Numbered from the stretch's first letter, positions 4,437 to 64,000 are shown. The stretch is 64,000 bases of DNA from Paragordius varius (GCA_964247055.1 OZ176056.1:2604001-2668000), one strand, 5' to 3'. Program-made: numbers and translations. The notes: a model not told the origin generated them from the sequence alone.

Positions 4437-6039
4437 TATATCTCTATATTCGCAATCATTGAAAACTTTTCGTGAATTTTTAGGCCCTTGTGTCTGTATT
4501 TTATAATTATTTTCATGCGTTGACCATTTACAGTTTTTTGATTTCCATTTTTACTGGTAAATGAGTAAAGTGGGGATTTTAAAATCGCTGCTTTACGCTC
4601 TACGAAAAAATAAAAATGAATTTCCATTTTTCCACATCTTTCCAAATGCTGAGATATTGAAATATATTTGTGCGGCTGCTTTCCTGATATTATATAAAAG
4701 TTAGTGAAAAACAATGTGGGAAATGGCTTTGGGAATCATTTGTTTTATAAATCATCAACTATTTCACCATATTAATAAATTTAAATATATTTATCTTAAA
4801 ATAAGTATATATATGTATGCAAAAAGCTGATTTATTAGGAATTAATATATAATTTTAAGAAATTTGTATATTGAATTATCTCAATCCCTGCTTCAAGGCT
4901 CTAAAATAGTTTAAAGATAAATTTTCGTGAAAATTAATTTACAACAATCATGTTACCTGTGAAATCTGGCATGTAGCCTACATTAAATATGAATTATATA
5001 TTTCTTAGTTTATAATATCAGTCATTATTTATTTAGGTAAATTTTTTCATAATTTTCCGAAATCCCAAAAATTTAACTTTTAAATATTTACGTTGTTTAT
5101 TGAACATCACCAGTTATTGTAGACAACGTAAAAGGTTTGGCGATTTTCTTTTATTTAATTTTAAAAATTCATAAGATTTAAAGTAAAATTGAATTAAAAA
5201 TTTTCATCTTGTTAAATTTTGTAAACTTAAAATGCTGCAATTTAAAAAGATCGAGTTATTTAAAAAATTTTTAACGGTTGTATATTATTACGATAAATAT
5301 TTTGACCGCGTTACATTTTTAAATTTATAGGACAGCTGTTTAACTTATTTGTATTTTGCATTTATTTCTCATATATGGCATTCCCACACATTTTTTAAAT
5401 TTAAAAGTATTTTGGTATATTAGATTTAACATAAGTATTAAAAATTTGAAGTTTTCGGAGTGAATGTTGGGCGTCAATTAACGTAATCGTAAAATTAAAT
5501 TACCGTCGATGAATTTTTTAAATTAAAAATTAATACTTTGTTTTATTTGTAATATATTTTATTGGAATTATAGTAGAAAAAAATGTAGATTAAAACCATT
5601 CAAGAGCATAATAAACCATTATCATTATTTTTTATAGTAATTAATTTAATTTTATCAAAATATTGACATTCGGTTCAAAATTGCAGGTCTTTTTATGTAA
5701 TTTGCCAGCGATCTATTAGGTTTTATTTATATTTGCACTTTGTAATATATAGAATGATAAACTACCCATTTTATCAATTTTATTTATCGGTCATTTTCAA
5801 ATTTTCTTTATAATAAATATATAATATATTACTTTCAAGGTCGGCATTATTAACTAATCGAGTATAATATAAATTAGATATTTGAATTTGATTAAAATCG
5901 TTTGATTAAATTTGAGATTATTGACGACCCCACAAAAACTGAAATTTTTAATCTACTGATTAGGCTTCCAAATTTTATTCACTATTTATATAATACACAA
6001 CTGATGTGATATTCAAGAGAGTTATAATGAGTAAAATAA

Positions 6040-7527
6040 TCTATATATTTAATGGAAAGTGGTGGCTTTGTGATCTGTTTCCGAAAAACGGACCCCTTCA
6101 AATATCGAAAAAATATAATCATTAATGAATGCCCTTACAATAGCTTCGCCCTTTTTTGAATTAGGTCCCCAGTTCAGCCCCACCCCGTGTAAAAAACGGT
6201 TTTTTTAACACAAGTTCACAAAAATCGTGTTTTTGCGACAATTTTCCCAAAAACGTGTTGGACCATTTGATTTCAAATATGATTTTTTTACTTATTTCGA
6301 TTGCGCCGAACATAGTCTGCTCGCTTTTTTAATATAGTCCCTCTTTTTACCCGCTTACCCCCGTAAAAAGTTATTTTTCTCAAAAAAAACAAAGTCCACA
6401 AAAATTTCGCCCAAAGTATGAGGCCGTAAAAATTTATTAAGGATTCCAAGTATTTCCCGTTAAAAGGCAAAAACTTTAGTCGTGCGTTTCTTTTATAATG
6501 GCTGACGGGTGAGGAGCTACCCGCTAAAAACTGACGCGTCATATCGAAATAGCGTGCCTTTGGGGCTAAATTTCAGAAAACCTATCAGGCCATAAGAATT
6601 CAATAGTTGCTTAAAGTATTACCCGTAACAAGGCAAAAATTTAGATCGTGCGGTTTTCAAAATTAGCCGTTAATTAGGCCCTTCACGCCCTGAATGCGCC
6701 ACCATAGAATGATTTTTTAATATTGAGGCATATTTTCCAAAAACTAATGAGATTTTTAATGAATCATGATTCCAGGTATTCTCCGTAAAAAGGCAAACAT
6801 TTGAATCAAGCGCTTATTTATACCAGCCTCTGGGTAAGAAACTACCTGCCAAAAACTGCGCCACTATATAGAAATTGAGTTGTTTTGGAACTAATTTAAA
6901 GACAACTTATGCCATATGAACTCATTTAAAGTTCGAAATATTGCCCGTAACTAGGTAAAAATTAAGGTGATGCCTTTTTTATTAGCTGTTAATTGGCCCT
7001 TATGCCCTAAAAATACGCCATCAGATTATTTAGTTTTGAGGTATTTTTTCGAATAACCCATGAGACGATGGTCTCAGAAATGATTCCAAATATTTTCTAT
7101 ATAAAGGCAAAAATTTAACTTAACGCTTTTTCCATTTGGCCTATGGGTAGGGCTCTACCGGTTTAAAACTGAGACGCCATACAAAAATGGCGTGGCTTTG
7201 GAACTAATTTTTAAAAAAACTTAAGAAGCCATACGAGTTCAATAAAGGCTTTAAATATTACCCAAAGGTAAAAATTATAGCATAGTGGTTTTTTCGTTAG
7301 CCGTTAATTTGGGGCCTTTACACCAGTAAACAATATATTAGTATGAATGCAACGTTTAGATAATCCTATTAGATCATAGCTATCAAATAAAGTTTCGAAA
7401 TAATCTACATATATAATCATTTTCTTGATCCTTTTTTTCAAATAGCCCGCCGCCCCCCCCCCCCCCCCCCCCCCCAGAAGTCCTAAGGACTTCCTCGGGC
7501 TGCGTAGCAGCACGAAATTTACGCTAG
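6040..7527 (+). mobile_element. Non-autonomous Helitron, copy 1
   Basis: A|TCTATATATT 5' end (A6039) and CTAG|T 3' end (7524-7527, T7528). Subterminal hairpins GAAGTCC-TAA-GGACTTC and GCTGC-GTA-GCAGC. Six ~160-bp internal subrepeats. Homologous over its length to 19345-21276 in reverse orientation. Confidence 0.85.
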
Positions 7528-8493
7528 TATTCATTATGTTTATAATTTATGCCTACTTCGCCATAACATTATTAATTTCATATATACAATATTGTTTTTC
7601 GTAATACACCGACTGTGCCACATAGTTAAGAGCGGAATAGATATATACAATTGCCAACCCCGATATATTAGGACTTCCCTAGGATAAAAATATATATTTT
7701 CGACAATGTTTACATAAATTTATTAAATAAATACATGGTTTTTTATGTATTTCGAAAAGTTCAATTCTGTACAATTAGTTTGGGAAAAAAATGTATTTGA
7801 TTCGCTATACCGGTTGATTAAATTTAACCGATGTTTTCGAAATAGTGCCTTTATTGGTAAATTTTTTTTATTTTACAAAATTTTCGGGTTATAAACCTAA
7901 TCTGTTCGCGGTTCGTTGCGTCACACCGTGATTTAAAATTAAAAGTTGATCGACAGTGAAAAATACTGTGTTTCTTAATTTGCAATATTTTATTTCTAAA
8001 GTCTGATGCCATCAATAATCTCATATTGATAATAATATTATTAAATTATATAATACAATTGTTTGCTCCAATTTCGTCTGTATTTGATAAATAAAAAATG
8101 AGATTTTTTTGGAAAAAATGAATTGAACAATAAAAATTGGGTATACTCAAGGCTTCTTGCATATCCGAAAAAACTACGAAACAGTATTTAGAGATGATAT
8201 TTTATTAAAGCTAATAGTTATATTATGAATGTATTTGAAATATCACTTTTAAATATTTAAAACCTGGATTCGTTGGAATATCTACAATAACAATATATGC
8301 ATTGAAATTTGAACTAACAGTTATAAAATATGTTATAATAGGAAATTTTTTACTTGAAACTACATTATCGACTTCTACAACATAAAAAATTAGTTAGAAT
8401 ATGTGAAAAGCGTTAACATAGTTTTAATATGAAATAATATTTTTTTGGCATTATCTCCAAACTAATTTCCAAAAAATTGAAAAATATTCATAC

Positions 8494-11400
8494 GATTTAC
8501 GATTTCTCCGAGTTCTAGATTTGAAGAAAAAATTAAATATTTTTTTTATAAGGAAAAAAATAAAAATATATGATATTTACGGTTGGAAAACGTTCCGATT
8601 TCTAGATTTGATAAATAAATTATTATATACAAGTAGGCTAATACACCTAGATATAATTTTCATTTAATTCTCAATTATTCCTAAAAAAATTAATTTCAAA
8701 GATTGCTAAAAAGATACCTGCTATAACTTCTCTCAGTCTTCCAAAAATATCTTGATTTAAAAATTAAAATTTAACAAATAATAGAAAATATAAAAATTAA
8801 CAAAAAAAAAATTAATATTACTTGCTTCTCTCAAACCTAAAAATTTATATTTGAAATAAATTTAAAAATATAAAAGATAAAATTCATATTAAAAAATAAA
8901 ATATTATACCATATAACATTCCACGAAATCCAAATGTTCTGACCACTATATAGTTTATGATAATTAAAATTTTGATCAAATACATATATATTAGCGTTAA
9001 CATACAGAATCCGAATGTATATTTAACGCTATATAAGCGAAAAAATCAAAAAATCATCAAAACAGCTGATTTTATATTTGAAAAATATTCTTTTAGCTTA
9101 ATGTTGATCCCAAAAGTGACAAAATTTATCCGGTATAAATAATTTTAGCAAAGATATAAATATCTACATATGACTGAATGCGTGTAACGTTATAACGATA
9201 TTATATTATGTGTTTATTCTATGTTATATGAATGCGCGATTAACCCTAAAAATTGCCAAGATTTATATCATCTATATTAGGATATTTATTGCATATATTT
9301 TGTTATTATTGAATTTTAATATTTTAATTAAATTTTATTTTCTAAATAGGATTATTAAACCTATAAAGATTTTTATTTAAATATTAGGAAGTTTTTGCGG
9401 TGGTTTACAAATTTATTAACCTACACGAGTTTTAAAGTGTTAATTTAGACACTTAAAGAGCGTTAAATACTCATAATATCTTTCATAATAGAGGCTATAA
9501 TCGAATACTTTAATTTCTTATCAAATAATCTTAAAATAAAATAAACATTTAGAGATGTCCTTTATGAAAAAGGGAAAGATATTTGGGAAATTTTTTGATT
9601 AATCGATGCCGTACTATTATATGTCGCAGTCGCTTTAAAAATAAAGTCAGATGTTTGTTAAATACGATTAAAAAATATAATAAATAAAAAAACCTTTTAA
9701 AAAAACAGTCTGTAGAAAAAAATAACATATGCATTTTAAATTTAAAACATAAAATTTTAGTTTTCCGGTATCTGGTTTTAGTTTATATTTTTGAAAGTTT
9801 TAAAATAATTCAGTTTTTTTAAATCATCTACCACCTATGGCATAAATGGTTTTTTTGGATTTCAACCAAATATAAAATTATGGTTAATGTTTTTTGTTGC
9901 TCAACTGTTGTTACGCGCGCGCGTTCGACCACTTCACAAACGAAAAATTCTAAATTCATTACTTATAACAACTATTATAATTATCATTGTTATCTATTTA
10001 TTTTCCAAGTTTATTCTATCTTTTATCAGTTTTTCTCATTCATTCAAAAAATGCACGAAATTACCTTAGTAAAATACTCCAATTCGAAATTCTTAGGATT
10101 CGTATCTTATTTTATTTCATTTTTATTAATTGATATATATTTATATATTTTTTTTCTTTAATTAATATTATTATTATTATATTTTTGGTTAAAATTTTTG
10201 ATTCTTTTTTAGATTATTATTATTATATTTTTGGTTAAAATTTTTGATTCTTTTTTAGTTGCTTTACATATTAGTTACTATATATCTTAGTGTTTATTTT
10301 CATCTATATTATTCTTCTTTATTGTATTTTTGTTTTTTATGAGTGTTTTATGTAAGGCGTGCAGGCCAGACCCGGCCAGTCGCTGCACGGAGGTAGGGGC
10401 CAATAGGGATAAGGAAGGTTGTAGGATGTGTTTTGCCAGTATAAATGCTGGTTCGTTAAAAAGTAAGTTATATGATTTAGTTGAAACTATAAGGGTAAAA
10501 AAAGTAAATTTTTTGTGCATTCAGGAGACCAGATACCGTGGAAATGGTACTAAGACGTTAGAAGGTAATTATAAAATGTTTTATTCAGGTTCTACGGATG
10601 GTTACTGTGGGGTTGCCATAGTAGTGTGCCCAAGATTTGCCAATCAAGTAATTGAGGTTAGACGTGCTGACAGTAGAATCATAAGTGTCGACCTATTGTT
10701 AAATAAGAGGGTTTTTACTATATTTAGCGTTTATGCACCCCAGATAGGTTTAACCAAACCGGAGAAAGATAAATTTTATGATTTGTTAGTCGCAGAAATG
10801 ACTTCATTAACGAAAGACAGAGAAATTATATTTTGTGGTGATTTCAGCGGGCACGTGGGACAAAACAGAGTTTGAGCCTTGGCACGGCGGAAAAGGTTAC
10901 GGGGTTATAAATGAAGAAGGGGCTAGTTTATTAAGATTTGCCCAATCTTATAACTTTGCTATAACAAATACCTTTTTTACGAAAAGGGATAGCCACTTAA
11001 TTACCTACGAAAGTGGAAATAAGAAGTCACAAATTGATTATATTCTAGTGCCACGAAAGTCTTTAAAGTTTGTTTTGGACTGCAAAGTGATACCTAACTT
11101 GCAGATTAGTACACAACACAATTTAATTATGTGTAAATATATGACAGATATACCAATAAATGCCAAAAAGCCTAAGCTTATAGCGCCGAAGGTAATTAAA
11201 TGGGATTCTCTAAGAAACAGTAAAGAAAGATTCGTAGAAACAGTAGGCATACTAGACAGGAACAGTGATCCAGAAAGTGTTTGGTCTCAGGTGGCAAAAA
11301 AATAAGAGAGGCGGGAGTTAAGGTGTGCGGAACGAAAGGTGGCAGAAACCAGGTTTATAGAGAAGCATGGCTGAAAGACGAAAAAATAATTCTGAAATCG

Positions 11401-14400
11401 CGAGAGAAAAATCAAGCTTTTAAAATGTGGAGGTTTACCCACCAAGCAGAAGACAAGGAAAAATATAAAAGGATTAATAAGGAACTTAAAAGGCTTGTAA
11501 GATTGGTCAAAAAAGAAAAGATGGCATCATTATATGAAGAGTTAAACAGTAGGCAAGGTTTAAACAAAGTTTTTAAAATTGCTCGACAAAGACACAGAAG
11601 AAAGCTGGACTTGCCCCCTTACGCGACAGCTATTAAAGATAAAAACGGCAAATTACTCGTTGAGGAAGCGAAAATATTGAAAAGGTGGAAAGAATATTTC
11701 CAGGACCTTGAATTGGGCGTCAGTGAAACAAGTTTACCCGAAACACCAGATTATAAATCTGCGCATATTGAAAGTATAACAAAAGAAGAAGTTCAGGCTG
11801 GTTTAGAAGAGATGTCAATAAATAAGGCTGCAGGTCCAGACGATATTAACATAAACTGTTGGAAAATATTGTCAGAGAAAGGTATTGAATTTTTAGTGGA
11901 TATTTTTAATAATGTAGTTACTATAGGTATGATACCAACCGAATGGAAGGAGAGTTTCACTGTTCCCATTTTCAAGGGTAAAGGAGATATTAATGATTGT
12001 AATAATTACAGAGGGATAAGATTGATGTCGCATACAATGAAGTTATTTGAGAAAGTACTAGAGAAAAGAATAAGAAAAATGGTTAGTATAGAGGGTAATC
12101 AATTTGGTTTTATCCCAAGAAAATCCACCATTGATCCAATTCACGCAGTAAGAAGGTCGAGAAGCATATAGAAATGAAAAAGGAGTTGCATGGAATTTGT
12201 ATTGATATTGAAAAGGCATTTGACAGAATACCTCGGAGCACAATATGGTGGAGCTTAAGACGGAAAAAGGTCCCTGAAAGTTACATAAAAATCTTAAAAA
12301 GCATGTACGAATCACACCAAACCAAAATTAAAACACACCAGGGAATATCAGGTCCTATTAAAATAAACGAAGGGGTCTATCAGGGGTCTGCAATCAGCCC
12401 GTTATTATTTATAATATGCATGGACGAAATTTCAAAAGAAGTAGGGCAACATGATGGCTGGTATTTTCTTTATGCAGACAACCTAATAGTGCTGTCCGAC
12501 GAGTTGCATGAATTAAAAGAATCGGTGGGTAAATGGATTGATGTGTTTCGACGATGCGGATTAAAAGTTAACAAAAAGAAAACGGAGCTGATAAATTTTG
12601 GCGGGAAAAAACAAGAAATAGAATTAGAAGAAGGGTGGGTATTTAAAGGTCAGGAAGAATGCAAATATTTAGGAGCGATATTAGCAGCTGATGGTTCTTT
12701 AACACTTAATATTAATTTAAGAATTCGAAATAGTTGGGCAAATTATAAAAAGATCTCAAGTGTGTGCGACAAATTGACCTAAAAGTGAAGGGTAAGATTT
12801 ACAGTGCTGTTGTACAACCAACAATGATGTACAACTCACAGACATGGGCAATAAAGAAATCAGAAGAGAGGCACTTTGAGGTTACTGAAATGAGAATGCT
12901 TAGATTGATGTGCGGTGTAATGAGGAATGACAAGGTGAAAAATGTCTACATAAGAGGAAGTACGGAAATCAAATCGGTAAAGCAAAAGATGATGGTAAAT
13001 CGTTTAAGATGGTTTGGACATGTTGAAAGAAGAGATAAAAATGGTAAAAAGATTGATGATTATATTGTAAAAGGCAAGAGGGGAAAAGGGCGCCCTAAAA
13101 CGCGATGGATAGATACAGTTAAGAGGGACTTGGCAAAACTGAACCTAAAACGCGAAGACGCCTTAGACAGGGTTCTATGGCGAAATAGTTTACGGATATG
13201 ACCGCTCGAAAGAGTGATATCATATAATGTAATTATTATTATTATTATAAAATTATGGTTAATATTTTACCAGAAAATATTTTATACAAAATACATTTAA
13301 AAGAATTTTTTTATTAAGGATTAAAATAATATTATAAATCTAAATCGAATAAAAACTTGATATCCATTCGTTAACACCGTTTGCCGTTATCTCAGCTTCT
13401 AAAAATTTATAAAAAAATAAATAATAAAATTAATTTCAAATTTTAAAAAATCTAATAAGTTTCATACGATCAGATATGCGATTTAATACTACATATTTAT
13501 AAAATATATGATAATCGTCAGAATTTTTTAAAAGTAATTTTTAAGAATGAATTGTAAATATCAAAAATAATTTACATTCTCTCATTGCAGTCATAGCTAT
13601 AAGGACGCAAAAAATATTTGATTAAAAAAATATTTGATTAAAAAACCAAAAAATAATTTATATAATAAATAATTGAGATAATAGTTTTAGAAATTAATTC
13701 TGAATTTTATCAGTATAATTTATATTTATAATACAGTAAAAATGGAAAATAAACGGACAAAGCCTGAAAAGAGATATATTTCAAAAGATACTTTTTTGCA
13801 CCTGAAATTATCCTATAAAAATCCTTTTATAAAAATCGTAGAAACAAAATTGATTGTGATAGACATTTTTTGAGCAATGTCACACTTATTAAAACTTAAT
13901 TTGTCAAATATCTTCATTTCGGTCGTCAAAATAAGTAACGAATTAAATATAAATTTAGTGTCTTTTAAAAAAAAATATTTTTACTTTTTGACAGTATAAT
14001 TTAAATTTTACTGTACAATTAATGATAATGAAATAATTAAATTATTCCCCTATAAACTGCTTCTTTGATATTTTTACTTACATCTTCGCAGCACAGGGTA
14101 TTCTGGGCTAGTGCCAACATCTCCGGGATCATCAAACACGTCTAGATATATATTACAATTAATATTTTAATTAAATGATATAAAAACTCTCAAAACTAAA
14201 AATATTATTCAGTTTAGAGTTTCATTTTTCTCTTTTAATATATTTAAATATAGAATGGACTTTAAAAAGGCTTTAACACCTGCCTGCTTTAGACTTACAT
14301 ACTTTCTAAAAATTGGCATCAAAAGTTAAACCATTCCAATTACCTACTATGTCGAATAAACGCCCAAATTATAATTTATGCAATAATCTAAAAATGAATA

Positions 14401-14882
14401 AAATAAATTACGGAAAGTTTCTTCATCTTCTCCGATTTCCGAATCAGATCCTTCTGACATTTCATGAGCTTCTTCATTTGGCTCGGCCTGTTCTGGAATA
14501 AATTTTAAAAAAAGTTTCTTTATTTTCATGAAAAAATTTAGATAATTTTATATATATTAATTATAATATGACTTGACTAAGTGTATGATCCATGGAATTG
14601 TAATTAGAGAATAACTTGATTATATCACAATTTTTTGATTAAATTAAACGTATGAGCCTCAATTAGCATTTAATGTAAAATATTTGACGCATAAATATAA
14701 AAATTAGCTTAATCATTCAAACTTTCGTATTATTCTTACATTCATAAGAGACTTTATTCACCTAATTGAATTAAAAGCACTAAAACTTTTATGATAAATG
14801 TAATATTTCTAGAATAGGAGTACTTAACACAATAACTTCTTAAGGCGCATTTTTGACTCAAAAACCCCGACGTGCCTCATTT

Positions 14883-14913
<31 letters not shown>

Positions 14914-17900
14914 TGGGGATAAGTAAATATTTTTTATTTCAAACATAAGACTGTAAAATTACACCAATATAACATTTTTTTCAGTTTAAAAATTTGCTTA
15001 ATTAACATTTACAAAGATTTTATAAGCTTTTTTGCAAATTATGGATTTTCAAACTTCCCAGGCCGCGCATAAGAGTCGCGTAATGGGGACCCCTGTTCTA
15101 GACACCTAATAGTTAGTACTTGATATAAAATTTTATAATTTTAACCAAATTGGACAAATTTAAAAACTCGACGAAATGCCGTGTAATAAAAGATATCTCG
15201 ATTGCACACGATTAATATATAAGGATTAAATGGTTCCAAGGGATGATTTAAGAAAGATATAACCACTAATACTTATTCGATAATTGTTGTTTCGATTTAA
15301 ATATAAAAATCTAATAGAAGCTGCTAAAGGTAAAGCAATGCTTTTATATATAAGTTTTTTAAGGAGAATCATATATTTTTTGGTAAAATTGTCTAATTTT
15401 CCTAAAACAAAAGCATAAATGCCGAGATTGTACGACAGAATGTTCATATAGATTAAAATAATAATTTGTCAGGTGGGGCTAACGCTAGCGAGTTTATCAT
15501 TTAGTTAGTTTATAATAATAATGCTAATACTTCATTAAATATATATATCAAAAAAAAATTTAGAGAAAGGATTCGAAACATGTAATCTTATTACCATTAA
15601 CTTCTCGGGGTTGTCCTTCATCCAAAACCTGTTCATTCGTAACTTCGGATTCCGGAACATTATCTTATAGGGGTAAATAAAATTTGTACCATCTAATAAA
15701 GTTTCATCGAAATCGAGAATTGAATCTATAAAATAAAAAAATTAAACAAATTTACCAAATAATTTATGTGTTTAGGAATGTTGATTTCTTGTTACATTTC
15801 CAATGTATTTTTTAAATCAAATTCTCTATAATTATATGTTGGTGAAAACTCCTTGGCATTAAATATAATTATCAATCTAAATGATATAATCATTTCGAAA
15901 GAGGATTATAAATTAATTTCTAATAATTTCAAATTTAGATATAAAAATCGTGTATAAAAAAATATTTTTGAAAAAATAACCGTAATCGATATTGCTGTTT
16001 TCACTCAAGCTGAATTCGGATGCGCTATCATCTAATATTTATAATTTAAATATTTTATTACCTATTAAAAATTAAACTTATTAATTTTTTGGTTTTTTTT
16101 TTCAAGAAAAAAATTATACCAAATTTTGCCATTTTTGGGTCTGTTTAAAATAAATTGAATAATTATATAAAAAGAAAATAAAAATCTCTTACTGCATATA
16201 TTTATAAAAATGAATCTTGTAAAAAAAGGAGATTATTGATTTCGTTAAATATTATCGTCTACCTGGTCCGGCATCTGGAAATTTAGGATATATAAATATA
16301 TATATATATATATATTAATTCAATAAATATAAATGATAAATATCAAAATTAAAACAAAATTTACCCTCAAAAGGATAGGGTCTGGATGATCCTATATGAA
16401 ATATTTGAATATTATGCATGCTTAAAGTTTAGAAAAAATTTAGATGTTTGACCATAATAGCCATTTTCTTGACATTTTTTATATCACAATTCGTTTAATT
16501 TTGAATAATAGATATGTATGATATTTAAAGATTTATAGGCATTCTTTTAAAAACTAAATAATTATAGAAATGTTAGTAATTAATTTTTAAAAAATAAAAT
16601 ATTTAAGTTTTTACCTCTTGAGGTGGAGGGTCTTGGCTCATTCAAGGCATCAACTATTTTAAATCCAATATATATATGTGGAGTAAAAATTTAAATTTAT
16701 ACGGACAAAACGTTTAATTATAAAAACAAATATTTTTCTACAAGACAACCAACCATACTTTATATATATCTTGATTTTTCAAAATATAGCTCATTGTTTA
16801 CAACTAAAATAAAAAATAGAGATATATATAGGTAACACCATCAATTAAGCATTTTACAAAAAATGATTTTATAGGATAAAAGGCTTGAAAAAGGTTGCCT
16901 ATAGAAAAAAAGCTGTCTCTATATTTTCACGTTTTGTCCGTTTATTTCAATTTTTACTGTATTTTTAAGAGATTAAATATATTAAATATTAATAATCAAA
17001 TACTACCTGCGCTAGTTTCTGTAATTTCTTCAGTAGCTCCAACTATAATAATAATATAATTACATTTTTAGCAAAATATATTAAAAATAAATTTATTACA
17101 ATGTTAAAATATATAGGATATTCAAGAATTTTTTCTTATTGATATATAATACCGGCTGTCTCTGCGCCTTCTTGAGCGGCACCCGCTAAAACTAATATAT
17201 ATATAAATCGATTATAAGATTTTTTCTAAAATTTTACAAAAGGTACATTAATTTTCCAAATGTGCATTTTATAAAGTTCTGATAACGCTTTAACCACAAA
17301 CTTATGACATAGTTTTTAAAATCGTAATTCAAATCGCTTATAATTCCCATTGAACAAAAATATTTACATTTGTTATATGAAATAATGGGTATAAATAAAC
17401 TTGAATGCAAATTGAAATCATCTTAAAATTATTATTTTAAATTTAAAACTCCATAGTATAAAGTCCGTCGAAATCGATAAATTATCAAGTACTTATGATA
17501 GAGTATGCACATTGGTGTGGTCATCTTATATTTTTGACCAATTGGCAATTATGGGTAAAAACAACAAATGTTTGAAATTCCAATTTTCTTTTATTTTAAA
17601 GTGCTTATATTTAATTATTGACAAAATTTGTTAAATATATTAACTATATTACGGACTAATTTTAATGTGTCTATTATTGTAACTGAAAAACACTTTTTCA
17701 GATACTAAAAAAAAGGTTTAATTTCTCTAAAGCAAAAAAATGTACCTTCTCCTGCACCAACGATTCCTGTCCCTGCTTCTATTCCTGTGGCGGCAGCTCC
17801 ACCCGCGGCTCCTGTTCCTAACATTATATCAGCCAATAAAATATTCATTTTCATATTTGAAATAGAGACTCTGAACAAAAGTTTAATGCTTATTGCATTA

Positions 17901-20900
17901 AAAAGTACGTTTAAAATTTACTTATCTTAAAAATTTAGGTTTAAAACCGACAATTTTAAAAATTAACAGGGATTAGGCTTTATATCATTTGCAAACTTTT
18001 TTATATATTAAAAAACTAAACTTAGCATAAATTAGCTGTTTATTGATTACATTTTTATTTAATTTGTTCTATTCACAATTAAAACACACTTCCGAAAGTA
18101 TATAAACGAGTTTATTGGATGTTGACTTTTTAAAAAAATTAAATTTTATTGTGCCAATTGCTAGGCAACTATCAATATAATATTTTTAAAATAATATAAT
18201 ATACCTGTTACAACTAAAACAATATTATATATTTGATTATATATCAATTTTTTATTAAAAAAATTTACAACTACCCAAAGCGGTTCCTGCAGTTAATGCT
18301 AAATATATTAATTTTATAACCATTAACTTTTAAACAATTCAGATTCACCCTCGAACAATTTAAATTCACGCTAAAATTAATTATGTGTCAAATAATAATA
18401 AACTAAGCCATAAATATATATTTCATATTAATGAGTTATATTAGCCCGAAAACACATAATTTATTTTTCAGTTAAATTTGAATTGTTCAAGGGTGGATTT
18501 GAATCGTAAATAGTATAGAACCTATGTTAAAACATTGAAAATTATATTTTTTTTATATACATACCGGTTCCTGTGGCAATAGCTTCTAAAATAATTATTT
18601 GAATGATTTGACCATATCATTTTAAATAAATATCATCTTATAAAGCATTAATATCTATTTGAGATGATCCCTAAACCTGCTCTAAAGAATTCATATAATT
18701 AAAAAATCATCCAAAATTTTAATCCCCTTTTACAGATTCGGATTCGTAAATCATAATATTTGAAAATTAACTTAAAATTGGATTTGAGTTTGAATTTGAT
18801 GAATGTTGCACTTGATGAGTGGTCGTTAATTTTGGCGCTGATATTTTTGGTTTCGTATCGACATTTTTACCTAGAAAATATATACAGCAATTGAAATTAT
18901 CCGGACAACACGTAAAAATGTAAAGACAATATTTTTTTCAAAAGACAACCATCCTTTTTTAACCCTTGATTCATCCTATAAAAACATGCAATTACAATCG
19001 TAAAATACATAAGTGATTGTTTTTACCAATTTACACTTCTATATTATACTTTGTAGTTTTAAAACAATGAGTTATATTTAAAAAAATCAAAATTAAAAAA
19101 GTATGGTTGTCTTTTTGAAAAAAATATTTCTTTATAATTTTACTTATTTTCTGTATTTCAATTTATACTGTATTTTTTTGTCATGGATAAAAATTAATCT
19201 AAGGGGCAAACAATGTAATGAAACACATATATATACATATTTATTTATATGGTTAGAAAGGATTAATAACTAAAAAACTATTTTAAAATAAGGCAGTTAC
19301 AATTTTACCAAAACATTAAAAAAATATATTACTTTATTAAAATACTAGCTTGTATCTCGTTCTGTTACGCAGCCCGAGGAAGTCCTTCGGACTTCTGGGG
19401 GGGACTATTTGAAAAAAGGGTTCAATAAAATGATCCATATATGTGGATTATTTCGAAACATTATTTAATAGCTATGATCTCATAGGATTTTCAAATGTTC
19501 ATTCATACTAATACTTTGTTTACTGGTGTAAAGGCCGCAAATCCACGGCTAAAAAAACCGCTATACTATAATTTTTACCTTTACATTGGTAATAATTAAA
19601 GCCTTTATTGAACTCGTATGGATTCTTAAGTTTTTTGGAAATTAGCTCCAAAGCCACGCTATTTTTTTGGCGTTCAGTTTTAAACCGGAAGACCCCTGCT
19701 CATAGGCCTATATAGAAAAAGCGCCAAGTATATTTTTTGCCTTTATAGGGAAAATATTTGGAATCATCTTTAAGACCATCGCCTCATGGATTATTTGAAA
19801 AAATACCTCAACACTAAATAATCGTTATATGACGGCGTATTTTAGGGCATAAAGGCCCCAAATTATCGGCTAATAAAAAAGGGCTGACCTTAGTTTTTTC
19901 ATAGTTACGGGCAATATTTCGAACTTTGAATAAGCTCATTGGCATAAGTTTTCTCTAAATTAACAACGCAATTTCTATATAGTTTCACAGTTTTTAACGG
20001 GTAGCTTTTACCCAGAGAAAGGTATAAAAAGACGCAGGCAAAATCTTTGTCTTAATATGGGAAATTGGAATTATAATGTCCATTTCCATATGTTCCTATA
20101 ATTTCTTGGAAATATAGCTTCAAAACTAAAAAATTGTTCTATGGCGGCGAATTTTTAGGGCGTAAAACCTTTCTTAGTGACTCATTGAAATAACCCCTTA
20201 TACTAAAATATTTGTTTTTAAGGGGTAATAAATATTTTAGGCCCTTATTGAACTCACATAGTCTCATAAGTTTTCTTTATAGTGACGAATTTTTACGCGG
20301 GTAGCCCCCTAAGTATTTAACCGCTAATTTAAAAAATCCGCTGGACTTAAATTTTTGCCTTTTTACGGGTAATTTTTTATTTGGCCTGATTTCTGAAATT
20401 TAAATCCTAGACAAAGCATTTTTATAGTTTGCGCAGTTTTAGGTGGCTAGCTCCCTGCCCAGAGGCTTTACGTAAAAGCGCCTGATCAAAATTTTGCCTT
20501 TTACGGAGAATACCTGGAATCATGGTTAATTCCATATGTTCTCATTAGTTTTTGGAAAAATTGCCTCAAAATTAAAAATCTTCTATGGTGGATTTTTCAG
20601 GGCGTAAAGGGCCTTATTAACAGCTAATTTGAAAAATCAACTCGACTTAAGTATTTGAATTTTTACGGGTAATATTTTAAGCACGAATTGAACTCATATG
20701 GTAGATTTTCTGAAATTTAGCCCCGAAGCACGCTATTTCGATTGACGGGTCAGTTTTTCGCGGGTAGCTCCTTATTCAGCAGCTATCATCAAAGAAACGC
20801 TTGACTAAAATTTTTGCCTTTTAACGGGGAATACCTGGAATCCTTATTGAATTTTTACGGTCTCATAAAGTCATTTAGGATCCATGGGCCTCGGTAATAC

Positions 20901-23161
20901 ATTGGGCGAAAAATAAATTCAAAAATCATTGTTGACCTAATTTTTTTAAAAAAATGGTATTTGACGGGAGAGCGGGTAAAAAAGGGCCTAAATTAAAAAA
21001 GCAGGCCGACTATGTTCAGCGCAATCGAAAATAATTAAAAAGTAACCGAATGGTCCAACAAGTTTTCGGAAAATTTGTCTCATAGACACTTGTGGACTTC
21101 TGTTTTCAAAAATCCCGTTTTTACACGGGGTGGGCCCGAACTGGGGACCTAATTCAAAAAAGGGCGAAGCTTCGGGGCATTTATTAATGATTATGTTTCG
21201 TCATTTGGATTTGAATGGGTTTACCGATTTTCAGGCAAATCAAAGCCATCACTTTCCCTTTTTATAAATATATAGCTTTTTAAATATTTAAAATGTGTGC
21301 TTATAAGTTACTTCAAGAAATTATATATATTTGCTTTTTATAATTTTTCTTCTTTATTCTATTAAATTTGTCTAAAAATATACAGGCTAATTTTGCTTAA
21401 AATAATTTTTAAAAACACATTTTTTCTAAAACTTTTTTTTAATATAATGGCAGATAAATATACTTGTTACTCTACTTGTAGTGATAGGTTTAGGTGTCTT
21501 TTCTGTTTTTGACTGAGTTTCATCTATCCAATAGTAATAATTAATATCATAAATAAAAATAAAGATATCGTTTATTAAACATACAGATATTAGTTTTATA
21601 CGTATTTATTCAAAAACATATATTAAATATTTTTTTACATATTTACGATTAAAGGATAAATGAAGATAGATTATGTGTTAAAATTAATTTGTATTTTCAG
21701 CAAATTTTAGCTTAAATTATTCAAAAATATACTTAAACTAGTTTTGAGCACAGCCTTTGTCTGGGTGATATTGAATACTTTAACGGTTGAATCTATCAAA
21801 GGGCAAAAAAGAAATTAATTGAATTATATACAGATAGGTAAAAGCTTTACGATATTGAATATCAAAATCATTAGATCAACGAATAAAAATAAAAAAAGGC
21901 GTCCTAATCCTAATGCTTCATAGGAAATATTTAGAATCTCCATTGTCCTGGTTTTAAGGCTCACAAGATATAGCTATAAAATTTCACACTTAAATTTTAA
22001 TCTAGAATTGAGATTATACGGTAAAATTTAATTTTTATTTTAACTATCTAAAATTTATTTTATATATTATAGATAATATATTTGTACGATTAATTGAATA
22101 TATCGGGTTAAAAAACTTATATTAAAAATTTTTTTATAATTTGCACCACAGGGGAAGTAGCGTTTAATTTAAACGATATCTCAAATATTATATATATATA
22201 TATATATTATTTGTATATTTGACATAGAAAAAACTTCTATTGACTCATTTGTCCATAAAAGTTTTCCAGAAGCCGGGATCAAAATCCAAAATGGCGCCAA
22301 AAATAACAATCCAAATTAATATTTGTTTTTTTAATATATGCTTTTAAATTTTATTTTAAAATATATGTCTATTTATTTCAGAATTTTTGAAGTAATAGCT
22401 GAGTGTTATATCAGATTTTTCATAATTGTAAGACTTATTTATAGCAGGGTTATATTTATATAAAATGCGTTTAAAACTACAAATAAAACCCAAACCGACA
22501 TAAAAAATATTGATTTTACTTGATGATTTTTGTTGATTGTGCTGCTGCCTATTAACATTTTGAGTTTTGGGTGATTGGTAGGCCTTCATATCCCTTTTAA
22601 ACATTTCTAAAAATTCATAAATATTACATACACACACTCACACATATTTATAATATATATATATTAATCTTATTAATAAATAATTACCAATAATTTTGAA
22701 ATTAAATTGATCGTATGTATCTGTGATATTTGATGATTGCGATTCATGTTGTAACATAACAGCTATATAGTCAAAAAATATACCATTTTTAGTTAAAAGC
22801 AACACTTTTCCAAGAAAATGCTATATTTTTTTAAGCATATGCAACATTTTTCAAGCAAATACAACATTTTTCATTCCGTTTTAACGTTGCACATATTAGT
22901 TTAATATACCTTGACAGCTTACAAAAATGATCAGTACTTTTAAAACATATATTACGTGATAATAATTAATAAAAAAGTAATAAAACCTAAAATATTAAAA
23001 TTTAGTAAAAAAATTCTATTATACATAATCTTCATATATAAATATAAAACCAAACATACATGTTTTATAAAAATATTTAATAGTAATAACTTTGATAGAT
23101 TAGGAGAGAAATCTGTCGCATTTTCTCTTGATAATGTATTTCTAATGATAAAATAATAATT

Positions 23162-23199
<38 letters not shown>

Positions 23200-25383
23200 G
23201 TGCAAAAAGGAGGGTTAATTTTTTTTAATTTTTTTCATGAGATAGCTTATTACCAGCGAATTCATTTGCCGCAAATATTATTATTTGTTTTCAACCTAGT
23301 TTTTGAAATATTGAGAGAAAATCAAAATCTGGCATAAAGTGAAAATTGAGGATAATTATAAAGATAATAAAATTATATGGATTATTATGATTTTAGGATA
23401 TATGCCTTAATTATATAGTTAGGGTTTCTCTAAAAAGCTCAAAGATAGCGAACACTCACATGAAATTTTTTTATAATCAAAAAACCAAAAAATATTGTTT
23501 TTTATTTTTACATTTTTGTCGTCTGGTTTATGAGTTATAAAAAATCCATACTGTTCTATCTTGGAATCCTACATGAGTGCGAATTATAAAGTATATAATT
23601 TATGCAAAATAAGATTCAAAATTAGTGGAATATCTACCAACAATCCGTACAAATCCAAATAATATTAATTTGTCATAAAACAGACTTGTTACAGGGATTT
23701 GTAAGGATTGTTGGTTGATATTCCACTACTTTTATATCCCATTTTGCATAAATTATGTACTTTATAATTCGCACTCATGTAAGATTCCAAGATAAAACAG
23801 TATGGATTTTTATACACTCATAAACCAGACGACAAAAAAATGTAAAATAAAAAACAATATTTTTTGGTTTTTTGATATATAAGTTTTTTCAATAAATAAA
23901 ATATGAATGTTAAGATTTTAATAGTGAGTTTAGGAGGTAAATAATTAAAAAAATAATTTTAATATAGTTTCATTTAAATTTATTTGTCTTATGAGTGTGT
24001 TAAAAGAAAAACGCCATTTGAGCTGATATTTTATGGAAACCCTAACTATATGATAGGCTTTTTATATAGTGAAAATATATCCTAAAATCATAATCCACCA
24101 TAATATCTCAAATTTTATCATTATTTCTTGAATTATTTTTAATTTTTACTTTTTGCCCGATTTCGATTTTCTCTCATATTCAAGATTGTCAACAAACAAA
24201 AAATTATGCGGCAAATGAATACGCTGGTCATAAGCTATCTCACGCAAAAAAAATTTTTTGCACACAGTGTGTATATATATGAGGCAGGGATGAAGCAAAA
24301 AGAAATTTATTATACCGGAAGCTTTTTGGTCCGTAGTAAGACTTTTATTTGCTAAGATCTTTACATCTTCTATAAATATATGAAATGTATATGTTTAAAT
24401 ATGTCTGATAATAAAAGCTTTTTATAGTTATCTAAAGTATACTCAAACCCAAGCCGCGTCTGATTTACGGATGTTCGCACCTTGTTCAAATTTATAAAAA
24501 ACGTATTGCGATTCCATCGATAGTATTAAAAATTTAATATTTGAATTAAAAATAATTAAATTGCTTGACACAAGGTAGGTGCAAAAATAAAAAATGGATC
24601 GAAAAAACAATTATAATATACAAATTCTTTCATTGTAGAAAATATCACTTTTTTAACCAGTAAAAAAAGATTCATTTCGGGATTCAGGAAAATATTTTTG
24701 GTATGCCCGAGTCAATGTTTAATGTTTTTATGGAGTTTTTTATCATTTAAGCTAAAAATTAAGGAATAATAGCAAATATCCTTTCTTAGTATCATCAATA
24801 TCTGTATTTACCTTGAAACATTTTCATCCATAAGTTTTCATATCTCTTTAAATCTAGATATTGATGATTTAAAGTTTAATTCCGAAAATTTTAAAATACA
24901 ATGGAATGAACATACCCGACAACATTTGAGCTGAATTTTTAAATTTATCAGAAAGTGAATCGGTTCTTGAGATGTTTTCTTGACCTAACCTGATAGTCTG
25001 GATTTCGCCTTAAAATATAAAAAAATAATTATCCTGATCTAAAACATTTGGCTTAACTCTAATTTAAAATATTTAAACGTTAAAGCCCGTCAAAATTCGA
25101 AATATTCCCATTTAGTACTAATTTAATCAATACCTGTGTATGAGTTGTGGAAATCATATGGTACTAAAATGTTTAAATGATATATGGAAGAATTGAGATA
25201 AACTATGTGAAGAATCATATATTTTAAATCAATTTTTAGAGAATAGGCGTTATTCTATTATCGCTCTATAATTTTAATTAAATAAATATGTAATTAAATA
25301 TCTTACAAATCAATAGACACGTACAAATGAAAATTCTAAAAAATTATCGATATCCGTGTTCTTTTTAATTCTTTGAATTGCAT
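8494..25383 (-). CDS. Micro-exon gene 1 (MEG-like): multi-exon, probably secreted protein of unknown family, built from symmetric phase-1 exons
   Basis: GC-richer islands, each bounded by AG and GT on the minus strand, in 5'->3' order (length in nt): 25134-25163(30), 24916-25008(93), 24812-24853(42), 24316-24369(54), 23091-23141(51), 22520-22606(87), 21733-21792(60), 21464-21523(60), 18772-18870(99), 18565-18585(21), 18275-18298(24), 18205-18213(9), 17746-17817(72), 17153-17185(33), 17007-17042(36), 16615-16653(39), 16365-16391(27), 16263-16274(12), 16005-16031(27; or 15981-16031, 51), 15690-15725(36), 15595-15663(69), 14412-14492(81), 14082-14141(60), 13576-13596(21), 13468-13488(21), 13357-13398(42), 9615-9632(18), 9471-9494(24), 8910-8945(36), 8822-8836(15), 8718-8750(33), 8581-8601(21), 8494-8514(21). 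All are 3n long and open in phase 1, and no junction codon in this order is a stop. A hydrophobic exon 25307-25335 (IFICTCLLI) precedes them. The joined protein includes ...KTPKPITTSRVT...GTGAAGGAAATGIEAGTGIVGAGE...EPNEEAHEMSEGSDSEIGEDEETF...LRRSMTAMRELLNRISDQAEITANGVNEWIS. The 14.0-25.2 kb exons are best supported. The 8.5-13.6 kb set, the start and the stop are less certain, and further exons may be missed. Confidence 0.75.
9889..13245 (+). mobile_element. Full-length RTE-clade LINE retrotransposon (APE endonuclease + reverse transcriptase), decayed
   Basis: Perfect 18-bp target-site duplication TATAAAATTATGGTTAAT at 9871-9888 and 13246-13263. 3' (ATT)n tail. APE motifs (SINAGSL, LCIQET, SVYAPQ, GDFSGH, SQIDYI), RT motifs (KGKGDINDCNNYRGIRL, QFGFIP, IDIEKAFD, GVYQGSAISP, YADN) and the RTE C-terminal RLRWFGHVERR...RGKGRPKTRW. 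Confidence 0.96.
10330..13201 (+). pseudogene. RTE ORF broken into five overlapping frames
   Basis: ORFs 10330-10875, 10835-11305, 11281-12171, 12174-12782 and 12764-13201 are consecutive parts of one APE-RT polyprotein. Catalytic YADD reads YADN. Confidence 0.9.
19345..21276 (-). mobile_element. Non-autonomous Helitron, copy 2 (in an intron of MEG-1)
   Basis: CTAG|T 3' end at 19345-19348 on the minus strand, same subterminal hairpin, 5' end GCTATATATT (TC changed to GC), about nine ~160-bp subrepeats. Confidence 0.85.
23194..24269. mobile_element. Foldback element: ~500-bp inverted arms around a ~40-bp spacer, in a MEG-1 intron
   Basis: Ends (T/C)ACTGTGTGCAAAAA / TTTTTGCACACAGTG. The arms mirror each other up to the centre near 23665-23700 (e.g. 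ccttacaaatcc/ggatttgtaagg, actcacatgtaggattccaagatag/ctatcttggaatcctacatgagt variants). Confidence 0.85.
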
Positions 25384-28300
25384 ATAATTTATAATCAGAT
25401 GATTCCCAGCTTATATATTGTCAAGTGCTTTTTTGGTTTACAGTAATTATGGTTATAGGCCGTTTCAGTATATTAATAGATATAAGGGATTGTATTTACA
25501 TGTTTGTTTACATGTTTGAAATTTATTTTATTAGTTAGATATATATAAATGAACCATGTATTTTTTCACAATTTTATTGTTACAGTTTAAATTCACCTTT
25601 AAACAATTCAAATTCACCCTTGAACAATTCAATTACCCTTGAACAATTCAAATTCACCCTAAATAAATTATGTGTGTTGGAACTAATATAACTCATTATT
25701 AATATTAAATATATCTTTATGGCATAGTTTATTTTTTTTAATTTTAAACAAAATATTATTTTTAAAAATTTATAAAAAATATATGTAATTTTTAATCTAA
25801 AAAAAATATAATTTTGAGGGTTAATTCGAATAGTTCGAGGGTGAATTTGAATTGTTCAAGAGTGATTTGAAGTGTTTAAGGGTGAACTCGAATTGTGAAC
25901 GGTACATTATTTATTAGATTTTAAATACAAGACGGTAAAATTCAAGCGTAACATAGCTATTTTTTCTAATTATTTTTAATTAAATAAACAAATCGAAAAA
26001 AAATAAGATGTTTATTTTACTTAATTTTCAAAAGGATTTTTTACAAAATAACGGATATGTTAGCCATCCCCAAAATTATGTAGACTTATCCACATTATTG
26101 GTAAAATTATAACACAGAAGCGCATTATAAAACAAATTGTGTCCATATTTAAATAAACAGATGAATGTGGTAAGATGGGAAAGAATTTTTTAACGACATT
26201 ATGTTGTTTTTACACATATGCTACTGTGTTGATAATTAATCAAAAATAATAAGTTTCGACCAACATAATTTAAATTTTGTAAATAACGAAATTGCTTAAT
26301 AAAAGATCTTGTACTATATATTTTCAAGTGCATTTTTGATAAAAAAATAGTACAGTAAGCGAAAGAGTGTTTATATGGCTGTTTATTGTAATATTTGATA
26401 TGTATATGCTTAGTGTGAATATATAAAAAATCAAATTTATAAAAATCTCGAATTGATGTTCTAATTTCAAATAGTGGGAAAATAAATTATAATTGTAAAA
26501 TACCAACCTCCATTCGTTTTGGAAAACAAGGATGATTGGGCAAGGGTGCCAGAAAAAAATAGGTAACAAAGGGCTGCTAATATCATTGATTTATAATCAA
26601 TTAAAAAAATTAAAGATTAAAAAATGATTTAAAACTGTTTTTTAAAGACGTTATAAATACTTGTTTAAAAAATTTTAACAGTTTTTTAAAATCTATTTAT
26701 AAGGTTGTTGTGTTTAAACTTTTGTTTACTAAAAATATAACATATTTTATTTAATACATGTTTACAGGCGTGAAAACCAATACACAATTTTGGTCTAGGC
26801 AATCTTTTTAACTTTTTTACATAAAAATTTAACAATTTTATATGTATCTAGAGTAAAATTTGTAAAAATAATTGGTTGATTATTTTTTGCCTAAATAACT
26901 CCACCATGACCAAAAATAGTTTGATATGCATTTCATAAACAATTGTTATATCTATTAAAATTTTTAAATTTGGTTACTACATAAATAAATTTAAAATAAC
27001 CATGTTTTAGGCTACTTTTTTGTGAAGATGTATTAAAATCGGCTAAAAATTTGGTTAAAAAACGATTTCCAATTTCGTTTATTGGTATTATGGGTCGAAT
27101 TATTGTTGACATGTTGGGTTAATATATATTCCAGACCATTTAGGAAACATACTTTGAAGGTTCTTTTAGATTGAATATTCAATAATTGTGTTCTCATATA
27201 AAGATAAAAAGCTTTAATTTTTAGAGTTTTGCGACTTCTGGAATCCGAAATTGGGACAGTTCCAAAACCCGATTGAAACAAACAGCAAATATTAAAATGT
27301 AGTCTGATAGCTCTTTTAAATTTTTTACCCTGTTGTATTAGAAAAAAATTATAGAAAAAAATGGTGTCAATTAGAGATGGGAGATTTTTGTACAATTTTA
27401 CATCCTTTTATAAAAAAATGTATAATATACCTAAAAGGCTAAATAAGCATATATATTCCGCTTAATCCCTAAATACTTTGGAAGATATTTAAATTTCAAA
27501 TCGCTCTGGGATATAAATCTGACCCGAAAAGTTATGGACTGTTACATGCCTTTTAGCATGTATAGTTTAATTTTTGGAGTTAGTAATATTGGAAAAAACT
27601 GGCGTCTTAATCTGTTTGCAATAAAATATAATTCGGCAATATTTTAGTTTAACAAGTTTAACCCATTTAAAAATTAAATTTAGTTTTTAGAATTTTTACA
27701 AAATATGTAGCACAATATAAATTGATGTGAGGATGGTAATAATCAAAATTATGTAAAACCAATTATTAGTTCGAAATTATCAACAAAGGCACATCGTGAT
27801 GGCAATATTTAATCAACTAGCAATGTATATTAAAAAGTATAAATTTACAAAAAGTTTTGTTGAATGATTAAACAATATCATTTATATGGGTGTATAAACG
27901 GGTATAGGGTAAAATTTTATTTGTGGCTTCATGATAAGATAAACTGTGCATAATTTACCAACAAAAAATAAAAATTTATATTTTCACCCGACTTATAATT
28001 TCATTCCCCTATAAACATTTTGAAAGTATCATATAGCCTAATGTGATCAGATAGGCTGTTTTTCGTAGTACAGTACTAGATTTTTAGAAAAAAACTGAGT
28101 TTACTGCTTTTTGAAATTAAAAAATTAATTTTTTATGAGTATATATTAATGACCTTTTATTTATTAATAGAAATTATATTAGAATTTGATATGGTACCCT
28201 CTGTAAAAATAACCCCATAATTTGTAGAGAAATGGTTCATTTTGCGGTAAAAAGCTAATATTGGCCTATTTTCAATTGGTTAATATTTTACTTTCTGCTC

Positions 28301-63660: not shown

Positions 63661-64000
63661 ATAGCGTAAATCTCGTGCTGCTACGCAGCCCGATGAAGTC
63701 CTTCGGACTTCTGTGTGGGGTATTTGAAATAAGGGACAATAAAATGATCCACATATGTGGATTATTTCGAAACAATATTTAATGGATATCATTTTATTGG
63801 AATTTTAAAACGGTGCATTCATGCTAATATATTGTTTACTTGGGGAAAATAGATTCAAAAAGTTATTTTTTTGGACTTTGTTTTTTTGAAAAAAATGGCA
63901 TTTTACGGGAGGAGCGGGTAAAAAGAGGGCCTATATTAAAAAAGCGGAGACTATGTTCGGAGCAATCGAAAATAACTAAACAAAAATCATATTTTAAATT
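63661..64000 (-). mobile_element. Non-autonomous Helitron, copy 3 (internally deleted, runs off the window)
   Basis: Same terminal sequence (gcgtaaatctcgtgctgctacgcagcccgatgaagtccttcggacttc) joined near 63840 directly to the 5' segment, skipping the subrepeat array. The terminal CTAG is degenerate (CTAT). Confidence 0.8.

Follow-up and report, generated by a model that had tools for sequence, protein, structure and literature searches.

Micro-exon genes and related systems in animals

In schistosomes, micro-exon genes (MEGs) have 10–20 exons of 6–81 bp, mostly 15 bp, and a signal peptide is followed by very small symmetric exons that make up the larger share of the coding region (PMC4350168, PMC10526429). 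Their introns are 0.1–5 kb long and rich in transposons, their products do not exceed 189 aa, and exon skipping is documented (PMC4350168, PMC10526429); a hydrophobic/aromatic motif follows the signal peptide (PMC10526429). Bicycle genes of aphids, which encode secreted putative effectors with CYC motifs, also consist of many micro-exons, with almost every internal exon beginning at codon position 2 (PMC9168663). The present analysis concerns a locus of related design in Paragordius varius, located in a stretch of 64,000 nucleotides (GCA_964247055.1, OZ176056.1:2604001-2668000; hereafter the window, in whose coordinates all positions are given). The locus is probably a single intact protein-coding gene on the minus strand, which spans ~18.6 kb from 26586 to about 7990 and comprises 35 coding exons and a terminal exon for a secreted product of 483 aa.

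Like schistosome MEGs, the Paragordius gene opens with a predicted signal-peptide exon, behind which come many very small symmetric exons; introns from ~100 bp to several kb, enriched in transposons, are a further common trait. Its product would likewise be a secreted disordered protein that has no relatives outside its lineage and is hard to annotate. The two designs differ in scale: the gene has 35 coding exons (10–20 in MEGs) with a median length of 33 nt and a maximum of 99 nt (mostly 15 bp in MEGs), and its protein has 483 aa (≤189 aa in MEGs). In addition, no MEG motif follows the signal peptide and no sequence similarity to MEGs is seen. MEGs are restricted to Platyhelminthes, whereas the genome here is hairworm-like, with 25% G+C, a wealth of miniature inverted-repeat transposable elements (MITEs) and a 26-nt intron. 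A preliminary description of the locus had assigned it the schistosome MEG architecture in a genome that, with introns of 24–29 nt, does not look like a schistosome's. The locus does consist of symmetric phase-1 exons, mostly micro-exons, in a non-flatworm genome, and the symmetric exons and predicted signal peptide agree with the MEG design; strict membership in the class does not hold, given the 483-aa product and the lack of motif and homology. Of the coding sequence (CDS), 32% lies in exons of ≤36 nt.

Many micro-exons of the same phase behind an N-terminal signal peptide are also found in aphid bicycle and megacycle genes. As in the bicycle genes, the fast-evolving proteins of a parasite-like animal cannot be linked by sequence search, and gene structure is the recognisable feature (PMC9168663). 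Bicycle proteins have paired CYC (Cys-Tyr-Cys) motifs, whereas the mature protein here has no Cys; unlike the bicycle genes, the gene has no family cluster in this window. Bicycle genes are further marked by expression in salivary glands and by secretion of the products into the host. The gene shares the architecture of both MEGs and bicycle genes, and is set outside the MEGs by size, motif and taxon and outside the bicycle genes by the CYC motifs.

In elastin-type phase 1-1 cassette genes, all exons split codons alike and any exon can be dropped in frame. Vertebrate elastin exons alternate between hydrophobic and cross-linking types, and the tails of chicken BG proteins are cytoplasmic, with 21-nt heptad exons. 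The Paragordius gene resembles both in having small exons that each hold one repeat unit, including 21-nt exons of one heptad, and in encoding a low-complexity, putatively secreted or surface product. It differs from both in that there is no sequence relation and that a basic mucin-like half, an acidic half and a heptad tail are combined. A signal-peptide exon ending in phase 1 and followed by 1-1 symmetric exons is also typical of the phase 1-1 exon-shuffling class; in that class the exons match folded protein domains, whereas here seven exon peptides gave no Pfam match at E ≤1.

Architecture of the exon chain

Twenty-four islands of higher G+C content were first set by eye, each lying between a T-rich ...TAG acceptor and a GTA donor; all are multiples of three in length (3n) and share one common frame. 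Extension of this chain in both directions gives 35 predicted coding exons and a terminal exon, with a CDS of 1452 nt (483 codons), as follows.

Exon 1: 26508..26586, minus strand, 79 nt, ATG and predicted signal peptide, ends in phase 1, G+C 0.41
Exon 2: 25134..25163, minus strand, 30 nt, 3n and phase-1-open
Exon 3: 24916..25008, minus strand, 93 nt, called by both frame-blind callers (see below), outside the training seeds
Exon 3, alternative form: minus strand, may be 24 + 15 nt flanking an in-frame 54-nt GT..AG segment
Exon 4: 24812..24853, minus strand, 42 nt
Exon 5: 24316..24369, minus strand, 54 nt
Exon 6: 22520..22606, minus strand, 87 nt
Exon 7: 21733..21792, minus strand, 60 nt, N-glycosylation sequons
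Exon 8: 21464..21523, minus strand, 60 nt, Thr/Ser/Lys/Pro-rich
Exon 9: 18772..18870, minus strand, 99 nt, the longest, Thr/Ser/Lys/Asn-rich stalk
Exon 10: 18565..18585, minus strand, 21 nt
Exon 11: 18269..18286, minus strand, 18 nt, or 30 nt with the possible in-frame acceptor at 18298
Exon 12: 18205..18213, minus strand, 9 nt, the shortest
Exon 13: 17746..17817, minus strand, 72 nt, Gly/Ala/Thr-rich, G+C 0.61
Exon 14: 17153..17185, minus strand, 33 nt
Exon 15: 17007..17042, minus strand, 36 nt
Exon 16: 16615..16653, minus strand, 39 nt
Exon 17: 16365..16391, minus strand, 27 nt
Exon 18: 16263..16274, minus strand, 12 nt
Exon 19: 16120..16140, minus strand, 21 nt
Exon 20: 15981..16031, minus strand, 51 nt, acidic region begins
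Exon 21: 15690..15725, minus strand, 36 nt
Intron between exons 21 and 22: 15664..15689, minus strand, 26 nt, GT..AG
Exon 22: 15595..15663, minus strand, 69 nt
Exon 23: 14412..14492, minus strand, 81 nt, Glu/Asp-rich
Exon 24: 14082..14141, minus strand, 60 nt, GTAAGT donor
Exon 25: 13576..13596, minus strand, 21 nt, last base T
Exon 26: 13468..13488, minus strand, 21 nt, weak (score -2.3), open, last base C
Exon 27: 13357..13398, minus strand, 42 nt, frame-blind call outside the training seeds
Exon 28: 8822..8836, minus strand, 15 nt
Exon 29: 8718..8750, minus strand, 33 nt, weak AAG acceptor
Exon 30: 8581..8601, minus strand, 21 nt, one heptad
Exon 31: 8494..8514, minus strand, 21 nt, one heptad, last exon of the preliminary description; a rival GTAAAT donor would give 14 nt
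Exon 32: 8354..8374, minus strand, 21 nt
Exon 33: 8264..8281, minus strand, 18 nt
Exon 34: 8147..8173, minus strand, 27 nt, weak (score -10.3), frame kept if omitted
Exon 35: 8057..8077, minus strand, 21 nt, last base T
Terminal exon, start: 7985..7995, minus strand, AA completes the TAA stop, which AATAAA overlaps

All 34 internal exons are 3n and all 34 start at codon position 2, and the 35 introns are without exception in phase 1. Exon lengths range from 9 to 99 nt with a median of 33 nt; 24 of the 35 coding exons are ≤51 nt and eight are exactly 21 nt, while 31 of the 34 internal exons are ≤81 nt. Exons of ≤36 nt hold 462 of 1450 nt of the CDS (32%), and those of ≤51 nt hold 44%. The G+C content is 41% in the exons and 21% in the shorter introns (<700 nt). 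Donors have A at +3 in 30 of 35 cases, and acceptors have T at -3 in 27 of 35 and G in none. Across the 483 codons the proposed frame contains no stop, as against 26 and 42 stops in the two other frames.

Exon 1 would supply the ATG and a cleavable signal peptide and end in phase 1. As all exons after exon 1 are 3n, the frame is carried across the 35 phase-1 introns. Any internal exon could be skipped, duplicated or lost with the frame kept.

The preliminary description had reported 33 islands of 9–99 nt, most of them under 45 nt, between 25383 and 8494. In 8494-25383, 30 AG..GT-bounded exons are recovered on the minus strand; the count of 33 is thereby lowered, while the greatest length stands (99 nt, 18870-18772), and 20 of these 30 exons are ≤45 nt. 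The claim that all islands are 3n, share one phase and join free of stops agrees with the present chain, in which 30 of 30 are 3n and open from the third base, with phase-1 introns. Both proposed gene ends had to be moved: the signal-peptide exon lies at 26586-26508, and four more exons follow past 8494, with the stop at 7995. Such a gene was also said to be almost invisible to ORF-based annotation, and the locus does contain a single minus-strand open reading frame (ORF) of at least 90 aa. The micro-exon chain itself is confirmed, with corrected ends.

Tests of the chain against chance

Because the seeds were chosen with the frames visible, frame-free tests were used. The trained frame-blind caller is a semi-Markov model that uses splice-site matrices and base composition only. 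Of the 40 calls it makes on the minus strand in the repeat-free part of the locus, 30 are 3n and phase-1-open; for both strands of the remaining window the figure is 59 of 357 (Fisher, 6e-14), and the pattern thus exceeds chance. Six unseeded calls score ≥4.8 (25008, 13398, 8836, 8601, 8514 and 8077), and all six are 3n and open, an outcome with a probability of ~2e-5 at the background rate of 59/357. With an untrained caller of generic parameters, the corresponding figures are 10 of 14 in the locus and 24 of 151 (p = 2e-5), and the longest in-phase run is 7, compared with 2 on the plus strand.

Codon usage points in the same direction. An ELP1-like ORF elsewhere in the window (see below) served as an independent, unrelated codon-usage reference, and with it the 5' part, the core and the tail reach codon log-likelihoods of +30, +89 and +9.5 bits, respectively, in the proposed frame and negative values out of frame. 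In the core, G+C at codon positions 1, 2 and 3 is 0.58, 0.48 and 0.29.

In favour of a chance chain of in-frame AG..GT islands in AT-rich DNA, or of a decayed pseudogene, is that no homologues were found for the exon peptides. Such a reading also gains from the frame-aware best-chain search, which separates the phases poorly and finds chains of 12–15 exons in other phases too; more than one frame is often open in a short exon, and the scores are dominated by transposons. Outside repeats, the same search gives 19 exons on the minus strand but only 1–3 on the plus strand, and this strand specificity argues against chance, together with the frame-blind statistics of both callers, the stop-free 483 codons (26 and 42 stops in the other frames) and the codon-position periodicity of G+C. 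The intact ATG, signal peptide, stop and AATAAA also speak against this reading. Chance or relic origin is strongly disfavoured, and its probability is very small. Pairing of splice sites by position weight matrices alone does not distinguish the locus from background in this AT-rich DNA.

Gene ends and a possible switch exon

A screen for ATG exons ending in phase 1 yields one good candidate, 26586-26508 (exon 1), which is the sole hydrophobic ATG exon in 18.9–34 kb that is neither repeat-borne nor AT-only. Its predicted product, M-ILAALCYLFFSGTLA, has a short n-region, a hydrophobic core and a TLA|Q cleavage-type site with small residues at -3 and -1 (a heuristic call), and is likely cut before QSS. 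No strong exon calls occur in the 7 kb upstream of exon 1. Other candidate starts were rejected: from the ATG at 25383, a TAG follows after 15 codons and the product is not hydrophobic, and the hydrophobic ATG exons at 24231, 21943, 28531 and 26146 are repeat-borne or AT-only.

On the 3' side, eight more 3n exons (8836 to 8057) keep the frame beyond an intron of 4520 nt, and the stop is formed as T|AA across the 8057|7995 junction, where AATAAA overlaps it. Upstream of this long intron, exon 25 has T as its last base and exon 27 starts with AA, so that their direct join creates a TAA stop, and AATAAA is present at 13315-13310, ~85 nt past this TAA. Exon 26, which lies between them, is the lone AG..GT candidate of 9–60 nt within its 177-nt interval.

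This arrangement brings in two tandem genes as an alternative, one for a 403-aa secreted protein from 26586 to about 13310 and the other for a small amphipathic peptide from about 9000 to 7990. If the weak exon 26 is left out, the stop falls exactly at the 13576|13398 junction, with the poly(A) signal at the distance given above, and a 79-nt ATG exon with a hydrophobic product is available for the second gene at 9003-8925. Also, joining the two halves requires a 4.5-kb intron with a long interspersed nuclear element (LINE), which one transcript would have to span; other long introns of the gene likewise carry transposons. One gene is favoured over two because exon 27 is 3n, GT-bounded and coding-like in the phase-1 frame, because its EIT-ANG-type sequence is similar to the EIG...N-type heptads in the exons near 8 kb, and because a separate downstream gene has no convincing start exon: the candidate at 9003 is AT-only, with Lys within the hydrophobic core and a poor GTGGAA donor. 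Two tandem genes are possible but doubtful.

In the single-gene model, a possible switch lies at 13357-13596 on the minus strand: omission of exon 26 would produce a 403-aa form without the heptad tail, with exon 27 as the terminal exon.

Predicted protein

The 483-aa product is divided into the following regions.

Residues 1–16: predicted signal peptide
Residues 17–99: polar, amphipathic; hydrophobic period of 3.5 residues, p about 0.005
Residues 100–201: basic, isoelectric point (pI) 10.9; rich in Thr, Lys, Ser, Gln and Asn
Residues 202–264: Ala/Gly/Thr-rich
Residues 265–403: strongly acidic, net charge -30
Residues 404–483: tail; marked heptad period in residues 425–466 (see below)

The sequence after the signal peptide is polar (QSSLFSKTNGVPYDF...), and the protein is largely disordered and of low complexity throughout. 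The mature protein, which contains 0 Cys, has a pI of 4.3, with regional values of 10.9, 3.5, 3.6 and 3.8. Five N-x-S/T sequons are present, all within residues 48–149. Neither a transmembrane-grade hydrophobic stretch after the signal peptide nor a hydrophobic C-terminus was found, and the Gly/Ala/Thr segment was rejected as a transmembrane candidate, its Kyte-Doolittle 19-residue mean peaking at 1.05. The product is most likely a soluble secreted glycoprotein, or a component of a matrix or coat, as judged from these predicted features.

The regions might act as follows. The amphipathic, helical N-terminal part would carry the five N-glycosylation sequons, and the basic Thr/Ser/Lys/Pro stalk is probably O-glycosylated. 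The Gly/Ala/Thr-rich segment would be a flexible stretch before the strongly acidic Asp/Glu segment. In the C-terminal tail, where several 21-nt exons correspond to one heptad each, the heptad repeats could assemble into a coiled coil that joins chains. The order of these regions matches the preliminary description, whose hydrophobic N-terminus is not found inside 8494-25383 and is instead provided by the exon at 26586-26508. The probable secretion of a modular protein, proposed at the same time, is in line with a classical signal peptide at the start and a modular low-complexity product (heuristic calls).

Homology searches, sequencing runs and points against the gene model

Two sequencing runs, X13 and X12, contain 5 of 5 sampled words of the 99-nt exon 9. 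X13, of transcriptome size, shares its sample and study with the genome runs; X12 is filed under another organism label. For words of the stretch 13300-19000 (5.7 kb), of which ~95% are intron words and only ~5% of 31-mers are wholly exonic, both runs lie below the 5% threshold. This pattern fits spliced RNA or an exon conserved in a relative, and is proof of neither.

Parts of the locus are contained in runs X12, X5 and X6, which bear three other organism labels; in X5, 22% of the words from the 5.7-kb stretch are present, as are 3 of the 5 exon-9 words. These three runs may derive from close relatives or from mislabelled samples.

Several points weigh against the single-gene model and its secreted product. 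Exons 26, 29 and 34 have poor scores, and exon 26 is required for read-through into the tail. The seeds of the trained caller were chosen by eye, which brings in some circularity, and the untrained caller is far less sensitive, recovering 9 of the 35 exons exactly. The signal-peptide and glycosylation calls are heuristic. The heptad period (3.5-residue hydrophobicity) in tail residues 425–466 has a value reached by 0 of 5000 shuffles, in a window picked post hoc, and the whole tail (404–483) gives p = 0.23. Among 1.84 billion representative proteins, phmmer found no match to the exon-9 peptide of 33 aa, so that the model is confirmed by neither an annotated nor a transcript-derived protein. 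None of the sampled exon-9 words occurs in the three RNA-labelled runs of 2017.

Introns, repeats and genomic setting

Introns of the gene range from 26 to 4520 nt, with a median of 125 nt. If the 26-nt intron were retained, a 131-nt out-of-frame segment would result, and its removal is required for the frame. The long introns are filled with transposons: in a self-comparison, all repeat families of the locus are intronic and the exons are unique. The elements are the following.

10330..13201, plus strand: degraded non-LTR (long terminal repeat) retrotransposon with endonuclease and reverse transcriptase Pfam matches, antisense within the 4520-nt intron 27
19341-21281, 6035-7531 and fragments at 63662-63980: ~1.9-kb repeat of higher G+C, the two window copies inverted, 74–79% identity
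23183-24280: foldback element in intron 5, outer arms 69% alike; inner palindrome 23471-23882, arms 88% alike
25580-25896, 18373-18520, 52369-52697, 46462-46757, 59555-59774 and 1078-1368: MITE family with GGGTGAATTTGAATTGTTCAAGGG-type terminal repeats, two copies in the gene's introns
18863-19194, 16682-16981, 43627-43918, 1380-1698 and 61328-61601: second MITE family, palindromic, ~300 nt

The ORF of the non-LTR retrotransposon is broken into at least 5 pieces, and an AT-rich trinucleotide tail lies near 13205-13245. One copy of the ~1.9-kb repeat occupies most of the 2.6-kb intron 8, and one copy of the palindromic MITE family ends a few bases from the exon 9 acceptor. A run of ~26 G (minus-strand reading) is present at about 7445-7470, at the edge of the 6.0–7.5 kb repeat.

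The G+C content of the 64-kb window is 25% throughout, and no tRNA or Rfam matches were found in it. Long ORFs in the window are few, namely the non-LTR retrotransposon pieces (10330-13201, plus strand) and the ELP1-like ORF (53473-57105, plus strand), which has 1210 codons and matches the ELP1 alpha-solenoid at E = 4e-10. The latter represents a conserved gene of ordinary kind, in which one exon is very large. In composition and MITE load, the window is consistent with the published genome of a hairworm, where G+C is 26.9% and repeats, mainly DNA transposons, make up 64% (10.1101/2023.06.26.546503).

Meaning of the frame-neutral design

Beyond the gene itself, the preliminary description had proposed a MEG-type diversification locus, in which combinatorial skipping of symmetric exons would generate pools of variant secreted antigens or effectors at the host interface. 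This is a claim added to the single-gene model and not a replacement for it. In its favour, all 34 internal exons are frame-neutral; against it, frame-neutral phase 1-1 exons are also usual in constitutively spliced genes for extracellular proteins, as reportedly in Patthy's exon-shuffling work, and in elastin. In-frame alternative sites are present (acceptor 18298 versus 18286, and the 54-nt GT..AG segment within exon 3), the splice sites of several exons are weak, as is often the case in cassette exons, and skipping of exon 26 would yield the 403-aa tail-less form. Schistosome MEGs and aphid bicycle genes, which are of the same design, encode secreted parasite proteins (PMC4350168, PMC9168663), a parallel that also favours diversification. 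By contrast, exons of ≤36 nt account for only 32% of the CDS, and MEG products are far smaller than this protein (PMC10526429). No paralogue cluster was found in the window either: tblastn of the joined protein against the window gives self matches only, with no paralogue. Diversification by exon skipping is unlikely on this balance. The interpretation given in the preliminary description is accordingly supported in part, its gene design and secreted modular product being well founded.

We read the frame-neutral design mainly as a way of gene evolution, perhaps with some tuning of protein length; variant generation would be a possibility that the design allows. In a broader and similarly improbable scenario, a genome-wide class of phase-1 micro-exon genes for secreted proteins would have arisen in horsehair worms without common origin with those of flatworms and aphids, and regulated skipping of single exons, including the 21-nt heptad exons setting coiled-coil tail length and a 21-nt switch exon deciding on the tail, would produce pools of variant surface or secreted proteins directed against the insect host.

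Significance

Apart from one incidental co-mention, a literature text search found no paper connecting micro-exon genes with Nematomorpha. The published hairworm annotation has ~10,000 genes and 72% BUSCO completeness (10.1101/2023.06.26.546503). Standard gene finding misses genes such as the one described here, and the published hairworm gene set may lack much of the secretome. The tail with one heptad per exon and the possible switch exon make a simple, testable case of exon structure mapped onto protein repeats. If RNA confirms the gene, hairworms would join blood flukes and aphids as a third animal lineage, once more one that lives in or on a host, whose secreted proteins are specified by long chains of tiny exons in one phase. 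Such a finding would suggest that a gene design favourable to fast change has evolved convergently.

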